A stretch of DNA of 64,000 nucleotides from Pocillopora damicornis (lineage: Eukaryota): contig NW_020845874.1 in the NCBI RefSeq assembly GCF_003704095.1, positions 248,001 through 312,000 on the forward strand, read 5' to 3'. Of the stretch, positions 28,301-53,220 are shown piece by piece. The notes beneath the pieces were generated by a model, which was not told the DNA's origin, did no database searches, and worked only from the letters and a program-made list of their open reading frames with translations. Position numbers and translations under genes: made by a program. How positions within the stretch are numbered: position 1 is the stretch's first letter; every line of letters starts with the position of its first letter.

Positions 28301-31300
28301 CCCTCGTGAGTGTCTTCTGTAACAAAACTTGGTATGCGCGCTGTTTTTTAGGAAATCACCATAAATTATATATAAATGAAAAGGTTATTAAGTGCAGAAG
28401 TCGTTAAAGTTAAAAGTTATTTTGTTTTTTTCCTCTTTTAAGGCAAACGAAACCGGGAAATAGAAAATGACTAAACGCCATACCATCGAGTTAATTGGAT
28501 ACCAAACTTGATTGCTGATGAAAAAAAGCGCCGACTCCCTTTTGTTCCTCAAAATTCATTATATATTCAGACCGAATTCAACGGAATTCGCCCGATTCAA
28601 CAAACTCTATTCATTACGATTACGGGGGGGAGGGGGTGTTTTGTCGATTTTTTTAGTTTTCTAAACATCTCACTTCTCCTCGGAAAATTATGTCAACACC
28701 AGGCTCGCACCGTCAGCCGTCAGCCAATAGTATAGTAGAACCCCTGATGTTCACAAAAGGCAAAATGGCGCTTCACAGTTTTCGATAAGCATGAGACCGA
28801 ATGCTGAGGAAAGCTCTTTTTAGGGGGAGCCAGCCTAAGGAGATTGTTCCTAGTGTCCTCTCCTTCCGTTTAGCTCTAGGTGATCTAAAGAAGAGGACTC
28901 TCTGATGAATCAGTTTTTCTTTTTTTTTTTTTTGTAAATTGCCTAACTATAAATTAAACGCCTAGCTTTCCCTAAATCAAGTTTGTTTTATTTCAGAGAA
29001 AAGAGCCAAAAACATCACGCGGAGTCCAAGTCAGCACCATCTGTGAATCGGTAAAGAAACCTTTTGATTAGACAGTACTGATCGAACGATATACCTTATT
29101 TGTTAAAAATCCTTTCAGCAAAGCACTTTTACTTCACACCACTAAAGTGCCAATTTTAAATGAATGAACTGATCATTGAACTTGATTTACGAGCACATAA
29201 AGCTAAAATTAAGTGATTTTCTTTGATGCTGTAGTGTTGCTATAGTAACCTTGCATAACGTGAAGATGGTGAAATAATGTTGAGATGTAACTGGACACTC
29301 TTTTGACACTATTTTGAGGGAAAACTATTAAAACATGTGGAAGTATCGGTCCATCTAAGAATTGGTGTTTCAAATTAACAAAAACATTTTTAACAACCTT
29401 ATGAAGCCATTGTTTTATTTCCTAAATTGCAGGCCTCTGAGAAAGAAGTCTCCGAAAGAACACTTCACATAACCACTGCCGCAAAGGTAAATGGTGTAAG
29501 CACAATTCTCGCGTCGACGACAGCAGCTCCCCTGACATCTATTGCATCAAAAGTTGTCACATTAGCAGAAGATCCACAACCCTCTCTTCAAGCAGCGCCA
29601 AGGGTGTTATTTGATTCGCAGCAACCCTTGACAGAGAAGCCGGCACCTACCGCTGTTGTGTACACTGTGAAACCCAGACTTGCCCAACTTGCAGAAAAGC
29701 AGAATGGTACTAGCACTCACAACCGTCTCCATGTGCCCCGTCCTTCAGCAAACGAATCCACAGCGGCTTTCTTACAAGTAGAACCAGGACAATCTTCGGA
29801 ATCAATAGCCTCCAGAGCATTCAGCCAACCTCCTCCGGCTCTGCAGAATCAGGCAAAATCTCTTTTGGAACTGATTCGAGAAAATCAGCTTAAGCTATCC
29901 CAGCAAACGGAACGTCTGGAACGACAGCAGCAAATTCAACAGCAACGCACATCACATCCGTTGGTTCAATCAACGCAACATCATCCATCTGAAACTACAG
30001 CTTCCCTTTTACAACAATTGCAACGTCAGCAACAACTTCAGCAACGGCAACAACACTATCAGAAACTGGTGGAACGCCAACCGCATAAAACACTTCTACC
30101 AACATCAAGTCAAATAACTGATCAGGTCACACCCACTTTGTCAGTCTTTTCCTCCCAAAAGCAACGACATTCCACACCAGAACAACAAGTAAAATCTCAG
30201 TCCCAATTGGTCAGACCTTCAGATGAATCGCAGGAAAAGCGGCCGTCAGCTAATTCTTCTATTGCCTTGCTACAGCAAAGAGATAATTCAGCAATTTATC
30301 ATAGGCCATCCCCAAGTCACATGCATTTCGTGGTAAACTCACAGACCAAGACATCGTCAGTTCCCTCGCATCCGCCAATCATGTTCAACACAAAACAGAT
30401 TGATGAGGTCTTGAAACGCAACGAAACAGCTTTGCCTCCAAATGGGAAGAGTCCAATGTACATGTCAACCCCTCAAAGTGAACCTCCATCCCAGTCTACT
30501 TCTTCAAAACAAGCTCCAATTAATCTTCAAAGATCAAACTTAACGCACACGAAGCCTCCAGCACAGGAGGTGATTAAACATCACGTCCACCACGAACGGC
30601 ATGTATTATCAGCACAGCCTGCTGCAGAAGTGACAGTGGAAAATGCGGTAGCACGAGGTCAAACGAATACAACACTTTCTCAGCGCCTAGTATCAACTGA
30701 CATTTTCCATGCTCGACCAAAATCAGTCGGTATGCAAAAGCATGCGCAGCATCCAAGCTCTCAATTGCAGAATATGCAATCACGACCACCACCTCAAGTT
30801 GCAACCCAAATGCAGAACACAACTGAAACCAGGCGTGAACAAGAGGTTTCCTCCTCCCTGTCTACAGCAATCGCCAAGCACAAACCAATTCAATCGGATG
30901 TTTCAAGCATGCCACAAACTATTTTGGTTCCAGCTCGCAAAAAACATACAAGTGAAGAGCTCCTTCCTTCTGGTTACAGATTCTCGCTTCCATCACCTGA
31001 GTATCTTCTTCAGCGTCGGAAGCTATATGAACAAACGCAAAACCATGCTCAATCGCTGACTTCCCAAAGTAGACAAGTATCCATGACTCATTCCCTTGAA
31101 AATAACTCTTTGAATGAGAGAATTATGGTCTCTTCGACGCATTCTAGTGGACACGCAGAAGCTGTATATACGGTGCAGTCCTCCAACTTTCACACCACAG
31201 CCATCCCAACTCGACCATTCCATCAAAATGGGCAGCGCGTTGATGTACCAAGCCAGTTGCCTCATACGGACGCTTATAACCCTTTTCTATGTCGACCATC

Positions 31301-31913
31301 AGATATTCTACTGTCGCAGAAGAAGCAACATGAAAACCTTTCACAGTCTCGTAACCAGTTATACAAACCACTTCAAGGGCAAGAACAAGGTCAGTTACCT
31401 ACAGGAACAGACGGAGGTGGAAATCTTCGAAGTAGCGTACCATCTCTACATAGGCCTCCCATCCAATCTCCAGGAATATCCTCGAGTGATCCACGTATTG
31501 AGAAGAATCCCCGTGAGGCTGAAAAATCAAGTATGGCAAACAGTTTAACCCGGAGTTCTTTAAGCGATCATGGAGATGCACTAAAACCTCTTCCTAAGCC
31601 GTCAGCGTCGATTGCTGCGAGGGAGAAAAAAATTGTTCTCTCTTGGAATATGGAACATGATGACACATCAGTCAAAGTAGATAATTACGAACTGTTTGCA
31701 TGCCAAGATGTCGACGAAAGCAAAGGCCAACCAATCAAGTGGAAAAAGATAGGTATCGTGAAAGCTCTTCCACTTCCAATGGCTTGTACACTCACTCAGT
31801 TCTCTTCTGGCAGCAAGTATTTCTTTTCTGTTCGAGCAGTGGATGAAAAAGAACGAGCTGGTCCATTTAGTGATCCGTGTACTGTCTCACTAAGTTCTCA
31901 CAAAGTTGCTTGA
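25377..31913 (+). CDS. ATF7IP: ATF7IP/MCAF1/Windei-like SETDB1 cofactor (~1071 aa). Exons 25377-25408, 25921-25949, 26512-26832, 27625-27749, 28048-28221, 28997-29050, 29433-31913
   Basis: C-terminal FN3-like domain (IVLSWN...YELFA...WKKIGIVKALPLPMACTLTQF...KYFFSVRAVD...GPFSDP) carries the ATF7IP family signature. It is preceded by a coiled-coil exon and a long Q/S/P-rich disordered region. All exons join in frame (phases 2,1,1,0,0,0). Confidence 0.88.
26114..26228 (-). repeat. MITE half-copy, left arm of an inverted pair flanking ATF7IP coding exon 3
   Basis: Reverse complement of 27070-27184, about 5 mismatches over ~115 nt. Confidence 0.9.
27070..27184 (+). repeat. MITE half-copy, right arm of the inverted pair flanking ATF7IP coding exon 3
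   Basis: Reverse complement of 26114-26228. Confidence 0.9.
27310..27600. repeat. Element with inverted arrays of a 10-11-bp unit (ACATACGAGT-like on the left, ACTCGTATGT(A/C) on the right)
   Basis: About 9-10 ACTCGTATGT-like units at 27468-27573 and degenerate complementary units at 27315-27376. Confidence 0.7.
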
Positions 31914-35648: not shown

Positions 35649-38600
35649 ATGAGGTTACTTTTCCTTATTTTTGTGATAGCCTGGTTTCATCCATCGGTTT
35701 ATTCAGGTAAGATGTTTATCGCTGATATACCTGCTGTCGTAATTAACAATAATTCTACTTTATCTATGACATGGAATGTTTATAAAGCCCAATATTCACT
35801 GCAAAGGGGTTAACGTATAGTTTATTTTTCTTGACATCAAAAAAAATACTAATTGATTTATGGATTCATTGACTGATCTTTTGACGGATTGATTGGCTAA
35901 CCGTAGATGTCGGAAATCCTTCCGAGTCACATAAGTCTGCGTGGAACCTAAAACAGGTCAACAGGATCCAGTTTTGTGTTCACACCACTCATGGTGAAGT
36001 TTTGGATGATTGGAGCATTGCATTGTGGTGAACAGTCCTATTCGATCGAGTCTTGTTGTTCTTACGCCAGTATTTCACATTTTAAATACAGATCTTTGTT
36101 CAATGTTTCACATCCTCGTTAATAGTCGTCATAATCTTCAAGATGTGAGAATGTTTTCATCTTCTGTTTTCTTTTATTTCAGCTCCGTTTGACGTTCGCA
36201 TTGGAAGAGGTAAAGATTGCTCACATTTGGTTCAATGTGTGTAATTAAGTGGAATAATTTGATAATATTACATTCACGATAACTTGGTTTTTCTTTATTG
36301 TACCTTCCTTTGCTTTCATTGTTTTTCAAACTTATGAAGATCGTGTCTTTAACGCAGGGCTTGCACTAAGACTTCATAGAAGGCAGGTTGCATATCAAGG
36401 TGAGCAATTATCTTGGGTTGTATTTGAAAGTAAACGTGACATCCGATTGGTAAATTATCATTTATCGTCGTTTGTGAACAGAAGCAAACCAGTAGTTCTT
36501 ATGTTTATTTCAAGAAATTATTTCTCGTATTATTTTTCATAGGATATCCAGGTTATCCAGAGTACACGTCTACCACGTCACAACAGACATTCAACCAGAA
36601 TGTTGCAACACAGCAGACAGGCGTCACATCTTCACGTAAGTACAGCCTTTCTTTTGCTTGTTTGATCAGGAGGAATTTCGACCTCCTTAGAAATTTGTAA
36701 AACCACAGTCGGAAATGCGTTAAGACAGCTTATGTCTTTGGTTTATATTTTCTTCTTCTTCTTACATATTTTAAACATTGCTTTTGTTTTGTAGCATTTC
36801 AGCTTTTAACAGTAGATCTTAAAAAAAATTCACACATTTTCAACCCGGAGGCTTCACACAACTGATGCATATTCAGAATTATGGACACCCTTAAAAACTA
36901 GTAGGAAGCTTTTAGACTATCACAAACACTTTTATAACGAGATTTATCTTGAGTTGCTTTTTAAAATAGAAACCTTGAGCTCAGCTGATTTGAACGGCAG
37001 TCCCGGAGCGACGGTTGCCTCAACTCCGACAACGCAGACAGGACAACAGCAACTAGCAACCCAAACTGGTGCTCGGGTTGTCCCAGTTCAGAACATCTAT
37101 CACACTTCCTATTCTTCTTTGTCAGCTGCTGAAAATTCATATCTTAAAAACAGCTCTTCTGCGCAAGATGTGACACAATCATCAGGAAATTCATACAAAA
37201 ACAGTTCAGCAGCTCCAGTTGCCACAAATTCAACCCTTGGCGACAGTTACCCTGTATACTATGTGTCAAGCTATCAAGAGCCAACTATACAGCGGCCGAT
37301 TTCACAACCTACATCAAATGCAACGACAAATCCGCCTTCTTCCTCATCTACACTAATAACTTCATCATCAGCACGTAATAAAAATAATTATCCAGTATAC
37401 TACGTCACGAGTCCTAACGACGAAAGCCAACAGACACCTGGAATCAGCGATAACAATTCGATCCTCGAGAAATCAACAAAAACCGTCTCTCAAAATAATG
37501 ATACCGATAGTTATCCTATCTATTATGTGAGCAGCTATAACAATGCCACCACTCAGAAAACACCAGCTCAGAATATAACAGCTGGTTCAATCAATGGAAC
37601 TGATACGTCTGACAATTATCCTGTTTACAATGTGGTCAGCCCTGAAACGAGTAAGGACGGTTTAAGAGAACCATCGAATAGCAAGGTTCCCGACTCACCC
37701 GTTACTTATGAAATAATAAATAGCACGTCAACTTCTAAACTGAACGGTAACAATTCTGTTCCTTCTTCAATTCCATTCAATAATACCCAGTCTACAGCTA
37801 GTAGCAGTAACTATCCCTCTGCTTCCACATCAGCGCCGGCATCACCACCAGCAAATAGTGCCTATAACTATTCATCTTATCCTGTGGCTCCTGCTCCCTA
37901 CAGTACAGGCAGCACATCATCCCCTGCAAGTGCTCCTTCTCCAGCAACCTACCAAGGCTACGGAACACCATCAACCTCAGCATATCCAGCGCCAGCGCCA
38001 GCTCCATATCCTGTGCCAAGCTATTATGGCTACTCAGCCAGTCAACCATCTGCATCACCATCAACAGTTCAGTCACCTGCACAGCCTTCAAATAACTCGT
38101 ACGCTTCCACATCTCAAGCTCCAGCCCCAGCCCCAGCCCCAGCCCCAGCCCTAGCTCCGGCTCCGGCTCCGGCTCCGGCTCCAGCCCCAGCACTAGCTCC
38201 ATCTTCTTCGTCTCCATCGACCATACAGACATCTGCACTGGCTTCAACCAGCTCCTATATTTCCACAAATCAGTCCTCAGCCCTTGCACCTGCTCCAGCA
38301 CCAGCTCCACCTCCAGTTCCTGCTTATCGTCAGACTCCAGCTCCAGCACTGACACCAGCTTCAGCTCCAGCTCCAGCTTCAGCTTCATCTGCATCTTCCC
38401 CTCAAATCACCGGCGTGTCATCTTCTCCTCCTCCTCTTTCATCAGAAGCCGAGTCCTCCTATTCTTCAGCTGGAGATCAGACGTCTTCTTCTGTTCAAGT
38501 CTTGAACACTCCTACCTCCCTTTCTAACCTGAGCTCACAAGAAACTCTCAACTCAGAATACGAAAACGCATCATATGTCATCGCCACCCCTCCTGAGAAA

Positions 38601-40174
38601 GAAACGATTATGTTTCTTCCTTCTCCTTCTTTTCCCCTGTCTTCACAAGCCACAAAATCAGCAAGTTCTAAAAACGCAAAAAGTTCGTCATCCAAACAAA
38701 TGAATCAACCATCTCTGTTAAATGCCACTATTTCTAAACCCCCAGCTCTAGCCAATACAACAGAGATCACTGCCAATCCCACTTCTAAACCACAAGTGCC
38801 TCCACCGGCTATAAACAATACCAACATGCAACAAACCTCAAATGCTTCGCTGTCAGTCGTGCCCCAGAACATCAGTTTTCCTGCTTTCAGAAATATGACG
38901 GACATGTCTAACACATCTTTTGGTGAACCTAGTTATAGCCCTCTGCCAGCTCCAACAGACGGACCAATAATCGAGATACCATTATCTCCTGAGGATCAAT
39001 TTCATTCGCCTTCGGTAGTCAAGACGAAACCGCCTCCATCGCACTTACCGACAAAGCCTCCCCCTGCGGCTCATTCTGTGCTAGTCACGACAAAACCTCC
39101 TGCGGCTGTTGGAGCTCATGCAACTGGCAAACATAAGGCGAATGAGTTGGGCTTTGGCGACAAATATTTAGGTATGAAAATTTTGCTCCTATAACTTCAT
39201 CTACCTTTTTTTCGGAATTTTTATTATGTTTTTGGGTTTTTACAGCCCCTAAAAATAAACGTGCTTGCCATAGGAACGTAATATTCGACGATATACTTTG
39301 TAAGGCGGAGATAAAAGTTTTTTATGGAGTATATATATGTCTCTTTTTTTAGATAGGTAAACCGTCAGGTCTTTTGACTTTATACTGTTTGTCGATTTTA
39401 TTAGAATTATTCAGACAAATTTGCTATAGTAGTTCTTTTTTTTTTGATAAAGGATTGCAATGAAAAGAGCGGCAAGCACAAAATAATAGTGAAAAAATCC
39501 AATCTAAATGCCTCTATGAATTTTTGTTTTATTCTTTGGTTTCTACAGCCTCTCAAAATAAACGTGCTCGCCATAGGAACGTAATATTCGACGGAATCGC
39601 CGGAGACAGTCAATGTAAGTATTTTAAGAAAACAAAATTGAGACAGTAAGAGAACTTTCTTCTCAAATTTGTTCTCAAATAAGCTTTGTGCATGGGTTAG
39701 AGTAATAACCATGGACGATTTGCAGTCAAACAATATGACAGTTCCTCTTGGTTTAAGAGTGATAACCTTGATGTGGTTCTCTCGAGTCGAATAATCTCGT
39801 TCTTACAGTCACACTTAAGGATTCGCGAGCATTTCCATTCCTCGTCCTGACATATTCATTACCATATGTCCACATCGATTCTTTTCCTTTCGTGCAGAAG
39901 AAAATCCTTCTCTCCCCAACACCTCATAGATTGGCATTAGAGTAGTACTAGGGCGCCATATAAGTTCCATTGCCATGTTTAATCCGTGATATACAGAGTG
40001 ATGCACATACAGTGTGTCCATCTCAAATTCCTTTCGTCCGCATTTTTGTTATAGTAAATAAACACAAACTTTCTTTTCATCCTATCAGCCTTCAGCAACT
40101 ATCAAGTATTCAGTCAGCATGATGTATTCTTCCCAAGAAATGGTAGGAAACGAAGAAATGTACCCGTTACTTAA
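35649..40174 (+). CDS. Secreted Ser/Thr/Pro/Ala/Tyr-rich mucin/extensin-like protein with a C-terminal RHRNV peptide module (~875 aa). Exons 35649-35706, 36183-36209, 36358-36399, 36543-36635, 36970-39171, 39246-39299, 39549-39614, 40089-40174
   Basis: Signal peptide MRLLFLIFVIAWFHPSVYS. All introns are phase 1 and GT/AG-bounded. The large exon matches the 746-aa ORF, with (AP)n tracts, many N-x-S/T sequons and YP[VI]YYV repeats. The tail reads KRARHRNVIFDGIAGDSQSFSNYQVFSQHDVFFPRNGRKRRNVPVT*. Confidence 0.8.
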
Positions 40175-41802
40175 ACCTGGTGACTGAAAAGTGTGGATGA
40201 TTTACCGCAGGTCAAACGCAGGAACAAGTATTTTCAATGGGAATCTTAAATGCTCAAAAGCAACCGCCACGTTTGCAAAGACGTAGAAAATAAGCATTGT
40301 AAATAACATTTCTCATAATATATGTTTATATATCTCTTCCAGTATTCTAAAGCGAATCCGGGATCTGATTGGATGCAGTCCCAGCTATTTATAAGCTCAG
40401 AGAGCGGAAAAAAACTCAGGTTTTCGCTAATAAACATTTAGTAATAGTCACTACTAACCCGCTTTTGGAATACAGTACTTGAGAGAAAAATGGGAAAAAC
40501 TTAAAAAGTTTCTTTCGATTTCAGTTCTCTTCCTGATTAGAGCTAGGGAGAAAAAATTAATTCGAAAACGTTTCGGTAATATAATTCTATGTTTTGAGTC
40601 ATTGTCACCAAAGGAATTTGACGACTAACAGCATAACTCTATATATGTTTATTCCGAAATCTTACTGTTCAACGATTTTACGAATGTTAAGATATCAATG
40701 AAGCAAATTATTTTCGTAGCAACCGTTAAAGTTGAAACACATTCAATGGTAAATTCTGATTCATGAAGCACTTTAACCAAGTGCTTCCTTGGGACGTGTA
40801 GACTGTAACAAAACTCTGTTCATCTTTATCAAGATACTCTGAATGTAAAAGATGAATTATCTGTTCCGAAATGATGTATTTCTCTGAACAGATGTTAGCA
40901 AATGTATAACCTGTACAAGACGATCTCAGTAAATCCCTCATTACATTAGAATCTCGTCTATGGCTGCCAAACCCCTATAATATATTCCATTCTGCTTATC
41001 GAGAAGATTCTGCTAATCAAAAATTCAGGGGAAATTTTCCTGTCCCATAAATGAGCTTCACTCATAGACAAAATTTAATTGTTTCAACATTTTAAGTTCT
41101 TCCTTTTTCGATTGCGCCACATTGGTTAACCCATGCATTTCCTGGTCATTAAAGTTGTGATATATTTGAACCAGTCTCCATAAGTAACAAAATAAGGTTG
41201 TTTATTCTATCTCCCTTTGTCAGAAATTTGATATGTACATGTATACATAGTTCAGACATCACTTGTTGTGGCCACGATTATAACTCATTCATATCAAGCG
41301 ATTCGTAGCTTCTTCTTTAATGTTTCCCTGTAGGCAAGACAGTTCAAAATATATTAAAATATGTACTTAAATCAATGTTGTGACAACCATACATCACCAA
41401 TCTTAAACGCAGAGTTTTCTGTGTTTGATGTTAGGTTTAAAAATTGGGGAGTATTACTCGGATATCCTTCAGTTTTATCTGGGAGATTTAAGTCACGGGA
41501 CACGTTTAGTCCAATCGGGCGCGAGAAAAAATATTTCTTGTATCATGATGGATTTTATCTTAGAGGTTTATTTATAACCTTGTTAGAGGTAGTATTCTCT
41601 TGGTATGTGACGTTAGTCAATTCTATATCATTATATTTCACTCATTATTGTATTTATGGTTGTACACCGTCTGGTTTCTTTATCGTACTTAATTGATTCA
41701 CGTTACAACCTATTCATTTCCCCCCTAATCTTAAAAAAGATAAATAGAGGAAAAGGGGGGAGTTCCAAGTAGGAGAATCTAAAACCAAGTGGCAACTTTT
41801 TA

Positions 41803-44800
41803 TTACCCAGTTTTTGTCTCCTTCTCTTCCGCTGATCTTTTGTTGTGGTTAACCAAAATGTGTTGCCTTGTGAGCACCGTGCTGCTTCCGCCTGCAGAAA
41901 AGAGATAGCCACAATGTTGCGTTAGGCACTCAACAAAAGCAGAGTGCAATAAGTGTACTACGCGTAACAACCGAATAAGTACTGAAAGATTATTTGATGA
42001 TTATTTCAAAAGCGAGCGTTAATTTTGACTTGGTTATGCACATCACGGGATAACTGTTTTACTCAAACCGAATATACTGACTGTCATGTTCATGTTGCAA
42101 TCAATCGCCTAAAAAAGGACCTCCAGCTTAAATCATAGTCAAATAGCAAGTGATGGTTAAGCCAAACAGAACTCTAGAATTTCATTTTGGATCTAGTTAT
42201 CCTATAAGATCTTACACAACATCAGGTCTACCACTGCCGTCAACCAATCAGACGAAGAATGATAACCATTGGTGTGTGGTCGCCCTTAGTTCGGTTCAGT
42301 CGAGGCAGTGTATTCTCACGTATTCTCTTTGCTCTGATTGGCCAATCTGGTTAGGTTGGTTTTATTGTTACTACACCAATCAAAAAGCGCTCTCACATAC
42401 TTTGTATAAATGCAGATTTGTTTTCTTACCGTAAGGATCTCCACCAACAGAATCAAAATAAACATTGCGGTGTCTTGCAGCGTAGTTTAACCTTGCTGTC
42501 GACAGAATCATCATTATTCACACCAATGTTAATAGTGAATTTCATCAATTAGCGGAAGAGGGAGCCAGGAGTGGCATAAATACGTTTTTTATCACCTCTG
42601 AATGGTTCAGGCCAACATCTAGTTAACTTAAAAGCAGTAACTGCACAAATCCCTTACCAATGCCATCTCTCTTCACGGCTTCTGGGACGTTTGAAGGACT
42701 GGATTGAACCGCTGGATAATATTGACTGGTGGCTCCGGCTATAAAAAAAAGAAGGACTATAAGATAAGGACTAATGTTCATTCTCAAGGCTTTGATCGTT
42801 AGTTGGCTTTTTCTAAAACGTTAAACACAACTCACATGAATCTAACTGTATTTGTATCACCATGACAACTCAATCGAAAGTGAGATTTATTGCTTAATAC
42901 TCCCCTTGAATTATTGAATTACTTAAGTACTCACGTGCTGGTGATAATTCTCCTAGTGAAACAGATCTCCTCTTTTTGTGATTAACGGCAATATGTGAAC
43001 GAGACAGAACAGGGCTACTGTGACCTGTTTGTAAAAGGGGTAAGAAATACGAGTGATATTTAACTCTAGACGATAATTATGCTTATGATATATTGTGGTA
43101 CCCTTCAAATGATGTTTTTCGATGATGCAACTTATTTTTTGACTTGAAGTGGCCCCTCGGGAAATGATAACACGTCTGACTGACACTATTCGTTATTCTG
43201 ATGAAGAATGAATAGACGACCCCACGAAGAATCCACTTAAGCATATATCATGGCACACAAATGGCAACCTCTAGTCCTTCTCTGAAATTGGCAGTGATCT
43301 AAAATCAATTTTAGAGGGCAGTACCTATAGGGTAAGGTTAACAATGCCTTTATCACCTATTTTTAGATTCTTGCAACATTTGTTTGGAAAGTTTTTAGGG
43401 CTAAAATGTACGCCTTTTACCACCAAATGAAGACTGTAGTTAAGTTCGTATTGTACCTACCATATGGATCTCCTCCAACAGTGTCGAAATACACATTGCG
43501 ATGTCTGGCGGCTTGATTTAGTTGTTCTGCAGCATTAAATAAACGCAAAATGTATCAGAGGAACTAAAAAAAGTTCGATACCGCCTCTATAGTTATGAAA
43601 AGCTTTTGCCCTTCATATCATATTAATAATTTACGCCTATACATTAAGAAGGCCCCGTCTTGCGAATTCTTACATTAAGACTCGTCCTGAACCTGAGATG
43701 GGTTTCTGAAAACGTTTCTCGCCTATTTGTGATTTTTCTTTCGCTGCAAAAATCAAGTGACAAAGATCAGACAGCAATATAAGCGAAAAAGGCCTACAAT
43801 CATACCAATAGTGTATCTTTTGTCATCAGCTGGGTGTCTTCCTCCGGTTATTTGCTCTTCAAAGAAAGCGGAAGGGAGCTGACTACCATCAACAGCTTGA
43901 GCTAAAAGGGTAAATAAATAGAATTCAAATTTCTAAAAAAAAATTAGTACTATGTCGATTAGTTCTCTGATCTGAAGAGTGTGCCAAGCGATTTAAGGAA
44001 CTATGCCCAATGACGAAATTGAGAGCGAAGATTTTCCCGTCTCTTAATTTCATCTCCCCAGTTTTAATCATATACGCTTAAAATCATTTACATGTATAAA
44101 ACCGATTCACCTGATTCGGGTTGAGTGAGTGATCTCTTTTTCTTGTGATTGACAGCAATATGTGAGCGAGACAGAACTGGACTACTGTGACCTGTTTCAT
44201 GGGTGCAAAAAAAATGCAGTATTGATGATAAAGCAACTTTATTTCATTTCGTTTAGTAGTTTTGAAGAAATAATATACCTGAGAAACTTTCTCACCGTTT
44301 TTAGCTCAATACTCATAGTTGGTTCAATTTAGCAGTTTAAATTGAAAGTGATTCACTCACCATACGGGTCTCCACCAACGGTATCGTAGTAAACATTACG
44401 ATGTCTCGCCGCTAGGTTAAGTTGTTCTGAGGAAAAGTTTAAGTCAAAAGATATCATATCGTAAAGATAAGAGATGTAATAGTAAAGAGTTATTGTATGG
44501 CAATATCAAAGATTTTTAGGTACCAATTGTGTATCTCTTGTCGTCATTTGGATGCCTTCCTCCAGTGATTTGCTCCTCAAAGAAGGCTGAAGGGAGTGGA
44601 TTTCCAATGGTCTGACCTTCAAAAAGAATAAACGTGTTTCAGGGTATTTGGATGTTGCAATTGTCGTGATTTACGTGATTCGAACTTACTTGCTATCAAG
44701 CTTGACCCATTTTCGTTTAATTTCTTGGTCAGACGAGCATGAATTGTTCAAACGTCTACATGCAGCTTCTACTCTCATGGAACGTACGACGAATTTCCTC

Positions 44801-45234
44801 ATGTTTAAGGCACAATGATATACAAAATACCTACCGATATTTGCAGGGTCCGCTATTCCACTTTTCTTAAATTCATTCATTCCATTTTGACCGGCGTAGG
44901 GTATTTCCAAACCTGAATAAAATGATTTTTTATGAGCACGTAGTTTTTCAAAAAGGAGCTCGGTAATCGGAATAACAGAATCATGCAATTGAAATGATAC
45001 CATCTTCTGCTGTGTATCAACATCAGTCTAATAAAGATCTAAGAAATTTTGAAGTTAACCTTTACTGAATTGAATTTATAAAAGAATTAAAATGAAATAA
45101 ATCTCAATTCTCGAGATTTTGGATTTTCATCTTCGTCCAGTGACTGCATTTTGTCTGGCATTTCTTCCCTTCGTACCTTTGCAAAAGGCAACAGCTCCAC
45201 ACAATATGCTGATAATGGGTATAAAACTCCCCAT
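41803..45234 (-). CDS. Secreted multi-copy peptide precursor (261 aa). Exons 45234-45177, 44616-44524, 44426-44361, 44191-44111, 43901-43806, 43526-43461, 43024-42935, 42738-42658, 42495-42430, 41891-41803
   Basis: Signal peptide MGSFIPIISILCGAVAFCKG. Nine phase-1 GT/AG introns, with a three-exon unit repeated three times. Differences between repeats are mostly at third codon positions (TCA/TCC, GCC/GCT, GAG/GAA, ATC/ATA, CAT/CAC), which fixes the frame. KR and KKKR/KKRR/KR sites flank each repeat. Confidence 0.88.
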
Positions 45235-52700: not shown

Positions 52701-53220
52701 CAGTAGATTTATAAACTAATGAGTGAACACTCTTATACTGTACCTAGTGGTTCTTGAATTCCCCAGGTACTTGATCTAAAGGGCCCATTGATTCTGTCGG
52801 AAAAATATCTTTTTCCCTCAGCACCAGTTGCTTTATTACAAAGAAATAAGAGTGTACCGATTAGATTTAACAACTCCAAGGTCTATTACGACGGAAAACA
52901 AAACAATGCCTGTCGTTACCTTCAGTATTGACAACCGTGCTCTTTTTATGCGAACCTGAAACTGATTAAGTAAAAACGCACATAATTTAATAAATCCGTC
53001 TACCTACCGCTCTTTACTTCCATATCCAGCTTCTAAATATAAGTAATGTTTTTCACTGTTCTATCAAATTCAAATACTACTACCACCGCTGCTACTACTA
53101 CTAACTACTACCACCACCACCACCACCACCACCACCANNNNNNNNNNNNNNNNNNNNNNNNNNNNNNNNNNNNNNNNNNNNNNNNNNNNNNNNNNNNNNN
53201 NNNNNNNNNNNNNNNNNNNN

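Follow-up and report, generated by a model that had tools for sequence, protein, structure and literature searches.

What does it mean that two genes facing each other on opposite strands of a coral genome end in, or are built from, the same short peptide-coding unit? The question is raised by a stretch of 64,000 nucleotides from Pocillopora damicornis (assembly GCF_003704095.1, contig NW_020845874.1, positions 248,001 to 312,000 of the forward strand), which we call the window and to which all coordinates refer. A sequence-only reading of the window had proposed that a mucin-like gene on the + strand (the + gene) and a compact precursor gene on the - strand (the - gene) share a module with a characteristic HRNV core. 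We find that two spliced, expressed genes do share one peptide-coding unit, and the observation holds in a stronger form than the one in which it was first put.

A six-frame scan of the window contains five copies of the HRNV core, two on the + strand and three on the - strand. When a core profile of 23 positions, built from the four good copies, was searched against the 234-Mb assembly, it matched these five places only, with E-values from 1e-15 to 4e-11 and 0.01 for a degenerate copy. The similarity is therefore not due to chance and the module, common to the two convergent genes, is confined to one locus in this genome. DNA identity among the three - copies (consensus AARHRNVY[FY]D[ST]VGGDPY) is 75-80%, and the + unit, whose core at 39549-39614 reads KRARHRNVIFDGIAGDSQ, is only about 50% identical to - units in the core. 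All four used core exons are 66 nucleotides long and in phase 1, with matching intron positions, and a basic cluster closes the following exon, just as the sequence-only reading had it; this cluster is GRKRR on the + strand and, for the three - units, HKKKR, HKKRR and HNKR. That reading limited the homology to the core: the + core stands, but the shared part extends beyond these 22 amino acids to a three-exon unit of about 45 amino acids with the same three phase-1 introns. In the - units, exon 1 ends ..GGRHP.DDKR/YTI, exon 2 is the 66-nucleotide core and exon 3 reads G.SS.VL.R.HI... The last three + exons, including the end of the large exon, align with the whole of this unit: GDK-YL with DDKRYTI, then the core, then ..S.SNYQV[FL]SQ.DVFFP with ..SSPVL[ST]RSHIAVP, and finally the basic cluster.

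Splice joints were taken from RNA contigs of four runs, from four studies, aligned to positions 38900-44700; 14 RNA runs contain parts of the 64-kb stretch, and both genes are represented in the RNA of all four studies. The two + joints, 39171>39549 and 39614>40089, are both GT..AG and occur in each of the four runs. The proposed splicing of the mucin-like gene to 39549-39614 and then to 40089 is thus borne out, and the transcript-derived protein P0001 (851 amino acids, 97% identical to the + gene) ends identically (..GFGDKYLASQNKRARHRNVIFDGIAGDSQSFSNY..FFPRNGRKRRNVPVT). RNA contigs carry the 3' untranslated region (UTR) of the + gene to at least 40703. Introns of the - gene appear in the contigs as CT..AC on the + strand, that is, GT..AG on the - strand. 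Its model has 12 exons, 297 amino acids and three units, with all internal introns in phase 1, and differs from the transcript-derived P0084 (297 amino acids) at only four residues, two of them at positions of read variants (43849, 43870). The - gene had been thought to stop at about 41806; in all four runs a further intron (41807>41327) joins it to a terminal exon whose stop lies at 41296-41294, and the 3' UTR of the gene runs down to at least 40755. Both gene models agree with the earlier proposal that the module is used once at the C-terminus of a Ser/Pro/Ala/Thr-rich, predicted-secreted protein of about 850 amino acids, and three times in a compact precursor. GenBank entry pdam_00005122 (P0087) is the same - gene, all shared exons translating identically; the deposited model of 257 amino acids is without exon 43024-42935 and the terminal exon, and is corrected here. 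In one run (X5), a second form leaves out the third core exon (41890>42657); this form is in frame and would delete the unit 3 core. All features are listed in the table.

Table. Exons and exon-like elements of the two convergent genes, in window coordinates
Feature	Position	Strand	Basis
+ gene exon 1: start codon, predicted signal peptide MRLLFLIFVIAWFHPSVYS	35649..35711	+	tblastn of P0001, boundary at tblastn level only; P0001 sequence
+ gene, two small 5' coding exons	~36357-36401, ~36530-36664	+	tblastn of P0001, approximate ends
+ gene large exon, ~735 amino acids, ends ...GFGDKYL in phase 1	36969..39171	+	open reading frame, tblastn; 3' end by RNA joint, 4/4 runs
Degenerate duplicate of core exon, 54 nucleotides, KRACHRNVIFDDIL	39246..39299	+	direct repeat D2; profile E 0.01
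+ gene core exon, 66 nucleotides, phase 1-1, (A)SQNKRARHRNVIFDGIAGDSQ	39549..39614	+	RNA joints on both sides, 4/4 runs; P0001; profile E 4e-11
+ gene last coding stretch SFSNYQVFSQHDVFFPRN-G-RKRR-NVPVT, stop 40172-40174	40089..40174	+	joint 39614>40089; translation; P0001 C-terminus
gene exon 1, ATG at 45234, predicted signal peptide MGSFIPIISILCGAVAFCK	45177..45234	-	translation, splice signals; same N-terminus in P0084 and P0087
gene exon 2 ..IPYAGQNGMNEFKKSGIADPANI, conserved N-terminal PY.GQN motif	44835..44912	-	contig ends at 44617 run on into 44836 onward; model; P0084
gene unit 1, first exon ..LPSAFFEEQITGGRHPNDDKR/YTI	44524..44616	-	RNA joints; model
gene unit 1, core exon, 66 nucleotides, phase 1-1	44361..44426	-	joints 44189>44359 (cut +2) and 44426>44524, 3/4 runs (X10 contigs stop short of them); profile E 6e-15
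gene unit 1, third exon GHSSPVLSRSHIAVNH-KKKR-SLTQPES	44111..44191	-	RNA joints; model
gene unit 2, first exon	43806..43901	-	RNA joints, 4/4 runs
gene unit 2, core exon, 66 nucleotides, phase 1-1	43461..43526	-	RNA joints; profile E 1e-15
gene unit 2, third exon (..HKKRR..)	42935..43024	-	RNA joints, 4/4 runs; P0087 vs P0084
gene unit 3, first exon, diverged, ends ..EAVKR/DGI	42658..42738	-	RNA joints
gene unit 3, core exon, 66 nucleotides, phase 1-1	42430..42495	-	RNA joints; profile E 4e-14
gene unit 3, third exon GGSSTVLTRQHILVNHN-KR-SAEEKETKT	41807..41891	-	RNA joints; model
gene terminal exon ..ETLKKKLRIA, stop 41296-41294, then 3' UTR	40755..41327	-	joint 41326>41806, 4/4 runs; contig 40755-41326

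Is the unit peculiar to corals? A profile search of 1.84 billion protein representatives gave 57 matches, 27 of them below 1e-10, and the named members are all 'uncharacterized' or 'hypothetical'. They come from Scleractinia (Montipora, Desmophyllum, Oculina), Actiniaria (Nematostella, LOC116606013; Actinia; Exaiptasia), Octocorallia (Xenia, Dendronephthya), Scyphozoa (Rhopilema, Sanderia) and Hydrozoa (Hydractinia). The motif, whose conservation in orthologues the sequence-only reading had presupposed, is carried by all of these groups: the module is cnidarian-wide and not a coral invention, and the - gene is the Pocillopora member of an undescribed cnidarian-wide precursor family. The consensus of 44 units, kr..i..LN.AARhRNvy.D..GGDPYg.ss.vl.r.hi.....kRs, has at least 90% identity at 14 positions, and genomic DNA of Nematostella and Dendronephthya has the core exon bounded at the same places. 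The number of units is three in stony corals and two in other anthozoans; in anemones and octocorals, several units close with Gly followed by KR or RS. Medusozoan members are longer (300-540 amino acids), with two units and the extra motifs PYLGQ[ND]LD..GIVRA, AKAYAEGYKAA and a repeated [KR]S.IP. At the other end of the scale, P0051 (115 amino acids) is a minimal precursor made of a predicted signal peptide, RRRR and a single C-terminal unit. Hexacoral orthologues also conserve the C-terminus ..TLKKKLRL, which the terminal exon encodes. In other corals and Nematostella, the genomic frame past ..LKKKLRL enters a Cys cluster (CSKCCC, CKGCCC) before the stop (terminal exons at L006:15796, L007:14708, L008:16451 and L009:15738); Pocillopora stops earlier (..LRIA), without the cluster, and some other-coral transcripts also end before it.

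What could such a protein do? We consider it probable that the - gene family consists of secreted peptide precursors, and rank this first among the readings. On its way through the secretory pathway, the precursor, disordered and bearing a predicted signal peptide, would most likely be cut by proprotein convertases of the subtilisin type. A KR upstream and a K/R cluster downstream flank all three - units of the window and most of the 44 units across Cnidaria. Predicted cuts at these basic sites give peptides of 41, 41 and 42 amino acids (P0084 residues 74-114, 155-195 and 234-275), of about 4.6 kDa and with an isoelectric point of 7.1-8.5. The AlphaFold2 (AF2) model is disordered (predicted local distance difference test score 44) except for helices at residues 76-86, 157-170 and 229-245, at the unit starts. 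The three freed peptides would combine a helix-prone N-terminal half (..I..LN.AARHRNVY.D) with a flexible GGDPYG..S.VL.R.HI half, and would serve as secreted signals acting on a conserved partner. Known cnidarian multi-copy preprohormones (Antho-RFamide, GLWamide, XPRXamide; Koch and Grimmelikhuijzen 2020, PMC7523074) likewise have repeated near-identical units separated by basic sites after a signal peptide, which is only predicted here, and some anemone and octocoral units of the present family, like theirs, end in Gly plus basic residues. They differ in that the units here are 41-45 amino acids long, each is split over three phase-1 micro-exons, and the three coral units would not be amidated. 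By language-model features, the named clusters nearest to the Rhopilema member consist of neuropeptide precursors (0.76-0.81), which we take as a lead only.

Several points weigh against this preferred reading. The three coral - units have no C-terminal Gly, and the pyroglutamate (pQ) or Pro protection of the N-terminus that is typical of cnidarian neuropeptides (PMC7523074) is missing from all units. The predicted peptides are near-neutral and far longer than known cnidarian neuropeptides. The latter measure some 4-10 amino acids. The hydrophobic N-termini MRLLFLIFVIAWFHPSVYS (+) and MGSFIPIISILCGAVAFCK (-) were assigned as signal peptides by eye only, and the RNA evidence, made up of contigs rather than reads, is blind to expression level, strand and transcript ends. 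On the + side, the Pocillopora unit is itself preceded by KR, so that cleavage there is possible, and the + tails of Nematostella (FPEN-stop) and Actinia (LQRKK-stop) end without Gly. If the precursor reading is true, it would add a long-peptide family of cnidarian-ancestor age, with a unit of about 41 amino acids and 14 near-invariant positions from corals to hydroids, to a peptide signalling repertoire known almost only from very short amidated peptides. Catalogues have evidently missed this family so far: the motif is absent from the text and 11 supplements of the hexacoral neuropeptide catalogue (PMC7523074), and neither motif strings nor gene identifiers were found in the open literature.

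The + gene product is of a different kind. Its large exon is Ser/Pro/Ala/Thr-rich and Cys-free, with four YP[VI]Y[YN]V motifs; mature P0001 contains 18.6% S, 13.0% P, 11.1% A and 9.6% T and no Cys, and the whole protein has 25 N-x-S/T sequons. It matches no Pfam family at E-values up to 10, VWD, Cys-rich, cystine-knot and SEA domains included; it has the Pro/Thr/Ser-rich domain expected of gel-forming and classical mucins, but not the mucin domains. Its orthologue in Montipora capricornis, P0008, shares with it a predicted signal peptide, a body rich in Ser/Thr/Pro, the ..GFGDKYL stretch and the C-terminal unit, although the bodies are only 33% identical; the name 'mucin-2-like' given to P0008 is compositional, with no VWD, Cys-rich, cystine-knot or other Pfam match. 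Could the unit, then, be a structural element of mucus or extracellular matrix, serving self-assembly or cross-linking, and both genes encode matrix components rather than signals? The composition and sequons of the + protein, and the recovery of both genes from all four coral RNA libraries examined, would suit this idea. We nevertheless hold it very improbable: dibasic sites around the units are conserved from corals to hydrozoans, small single-unit precursors are found among the members, and neither Cys nor any collagen, VWD, EGF or other matrix domain is present.

Under the secreted-precursor reading, the + unit probably remains at the end of its stalk, because the conserved upstream KR has been lost: the residues before it vary by species (NKR, NQR, NDR, NER, NRF, NQY, NKY) and form no conserved dibasic site. 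Stony-coral + tails (Montipora 'mucin-2-like' and three other coral loci) end FFP[RK].G-RK(-stop). Gly plus basic residues is the usual substrate for carboxypeptidase trimming and amidation, which this tail would undergo; amidation of the + tail would not be general, since the anemone tails have no terminal Gly. Secretion, convertase cleavage, trimming and amidation of the + tail, glycosylation of the stalk and a signalling role are what we infer from sequence.

How old is the pair? In the tree, the + units (from Pocillopora, Montipora and further transcripts) fall into a single clade, supported at 100%, whose branch measures 3.9 changes per site. The tree does not settle the placement of this clade among the other units, but its long branch indicates that the split between + and - types is old. 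The tail-to-tail pair recurs in three other stony-coral assemblies (L006, L007, L008), where two or three core exons on the - strand lie 4.5-9 kb beyond the + tail exons; L006, fully spanned by the flank, has the full - gene structure, and L007 and L008 most of it. In Nematostella (L009), a convergent gene of 193 amino acids, which reads ..EEYGFSDKYL, ASQNRFAVRRNVIFDVVGGDSM, AFSNYNVLSKQEISFPEN-stop, lies about 550 nucleotides beyond the precursor gene, and the same tail-to-tail arrangement is found in Actinia (L015). At L013 both gene types are linked on one strand; no + type gene was found within 10 kb of the family gene in Dendronephthya (L010) or Rhopilema (L014). The two genes are an old paralogous convergent pair whose linkage, conserved in other cnidarian genomes, has been kept across Hexacorallia; both would encode secreted proteins built on the same unit. 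Exon shuffling or inverted duplication had been suggested as the origin of the pair: duplication stands, but a recent inverted duplication is ruled out by the long + branch and by the presence of the pair in sea anemones.

The two genes also meet at their 3' ends. The tail-to-tail orientation was described correctly, but the coding ends are about 1.1 kb apart, and not about 1.6 kb, once the terminal exon of the - gene is taken into account. From about 40.7 to 41.3 kb the 3' UTRs touch or overlap, and RNA contigs cover this interval (40703-41328) without a break; candidate poly(A) signals lie at 40429 (AATAAA) and 41148 (ATTAAA) on the + strand, and at 41201 and 40648 (both AATAAA) on the - strand.

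The suggestion of a 'tethered versus free' system has the same receptor- or matrix-binding module existing in a diffusible form (- gene) and a stalk-tethered form (+ gene). The two would recognize a common partner or each other, either as ligands, one free and one immobilised, that compete or cooperate, or as a cross-linking tag. The cleavage-site pattern fits, with KR before the - type units and no conserved dibasic site before the + units; the pair has been retained since the coral-anemone ancestor; both genes are present in the RNA of all four studies; and, with 3' UTRs that meet or overlap, convergent transcription may co-regulate them. Against this, the + unit is about half identical in the core, sits on a very long branch and has altered cores in anemones (AVRRNVIFD, ATRRNVVFD), and a partner shared by + and - units is not implied given this divergence. 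Anthozoan microsynteny generally decays slowly, which makes linkage alone weak evidence. We regard the suggestion as unlikely. A fuller version, in which free and tethered signalling was kept through Hexacorallia history, with a cnidarian-wide hormone-like peptide of about 41 amino acids, a diverged copy, trimmed or amidated at its C-terminus, on a glycosylated stalk and expression coupled by overlapping 3' ends, seems to us slightly less likely still. Fractalkine (CX3CL1) is an example of a mucin-stalk-tethered ligand with soluble paralogues; here too a long stalk rich in Ser/Thr/Pro would carry a small ligand-like module, and related modules are predicted to be secreted free. The analogy is one of design: there is no sequence relation, no transmembrane anchor is seen in the + protein, and the module is C-terminal and a putative ligand only. 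A mucin-stalk paralogue that has stayed tail-to-tail with a precursor gene since the coral-anemone split is a concrete case in which to ask if convergent neighbours are coupled in function.

Does the family belong to anything known? Neither the exon translations nor 12 full proteins had a meaningful match in Pfam, sequence searches of NCBIfam and PDB returned no relative, and an ESM Atlas search with part of P0060 gave no usable match. Three candidate assignments were set aside. A precomputed match of P0009 to PF27337, 'YorF (faint)', was dismissed as irrelevant. A resemblance to CRH/diuretic hormone 44 (EQL..A.H.N, 41 amino acids) was not borne out by any match to the Pfam CRF family (PF00473) in exon translations or full proteins. 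The automatic UniRef name of P0087, 'Zasp-like motif domain-containing protein', corresponds to no ZM/DUF4749 Pfam match in P0067 or P0009 at E-values up to 10.

The most specific resemblance is to the neuroendocrine protein 7B2 (SCG5, PF05281). Rather than encoding a hormone precursor, the - family could assist the regulated secretory pathway in the manner of granins or 7B2, as a convertase-binding or sorting protein whose conserved unit binds a processing enzyme; separately, it may be the relative of 7B2-type convertase partners that has been missing from cnidarians. The family proteins are disordered, as granins are, and share with 7B2 secretion and cutting at a polybasic site, both predicted here. 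In human 7B2, the inhibitory C-terminal peptide (..NPYLQG....KK) follows a polybasic RRKRR furin site. Medusozoan members (P0013, P0060, P0015) carry RRSRMPYLGQNLD.LG[IV][VI]RA.P right after a polybasic site (RRSR), and coral members begin ..PYAGQN..FKKS.IP (window 44835-44912; also ..PYAGQN..FKKS.I.DP) after the signal peptide. A PY(L)xGQxLD...basic-S/A-x-P motif follows the polybasic site in both the medusozoan members and the 7B2 C-terminal peptide; aligned by hand, the human peptide (PMC3202544) and the medusozoan motif have 11 of 24 positions identical with one gap, or about 20 bits. The resemblance is short, however, and carries a large look-elsewhere factor. Secretogranin_V (PF05281) matches none of 10 members at E-values up to 10; nor does it match the genome, but that search is uninformative, control genomes being equally silent. 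The PPNPCP motif is absent from all 11 members scanned by regular expression, there is no conserved Cys pair (several members have zero or one Cys), and multi-copy units with flanking dibasic sites, like the single-unit precursor of 115 amino acids, look more like released peptides. Membership in the 7B2 family is not supported, and we judge a helper role improbable.

Some minor features of the region may be added. The second + strand copy of the core (39246-39299) lies in a tandem duplication of 303 nucleotides (window 39215-39593, 88% identity) that includes the acceptor region. Cys has replaced Arg and the GD half is lost; the AG/GT signals and the frame are intact. RNA depth is zero at 39288-39481, and the joint 39171>39549 bypasses the copy. 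We reject it as a used exon, as it is skipped in the RNA of all four runs. The other coral loci (L006-L008) showed no counterpart, each having a single + copy.

Elsewhere in the window, positions 53138-53220 are a run of 83 N. Upstream of the + gene, an open frame of 828 amino acids lies at 29427-31913 (+); its counterparts in L006 and L008 carry the Pfam domain fn3_4 (PF16794), and the microsynteny therefore reaches a third gene.

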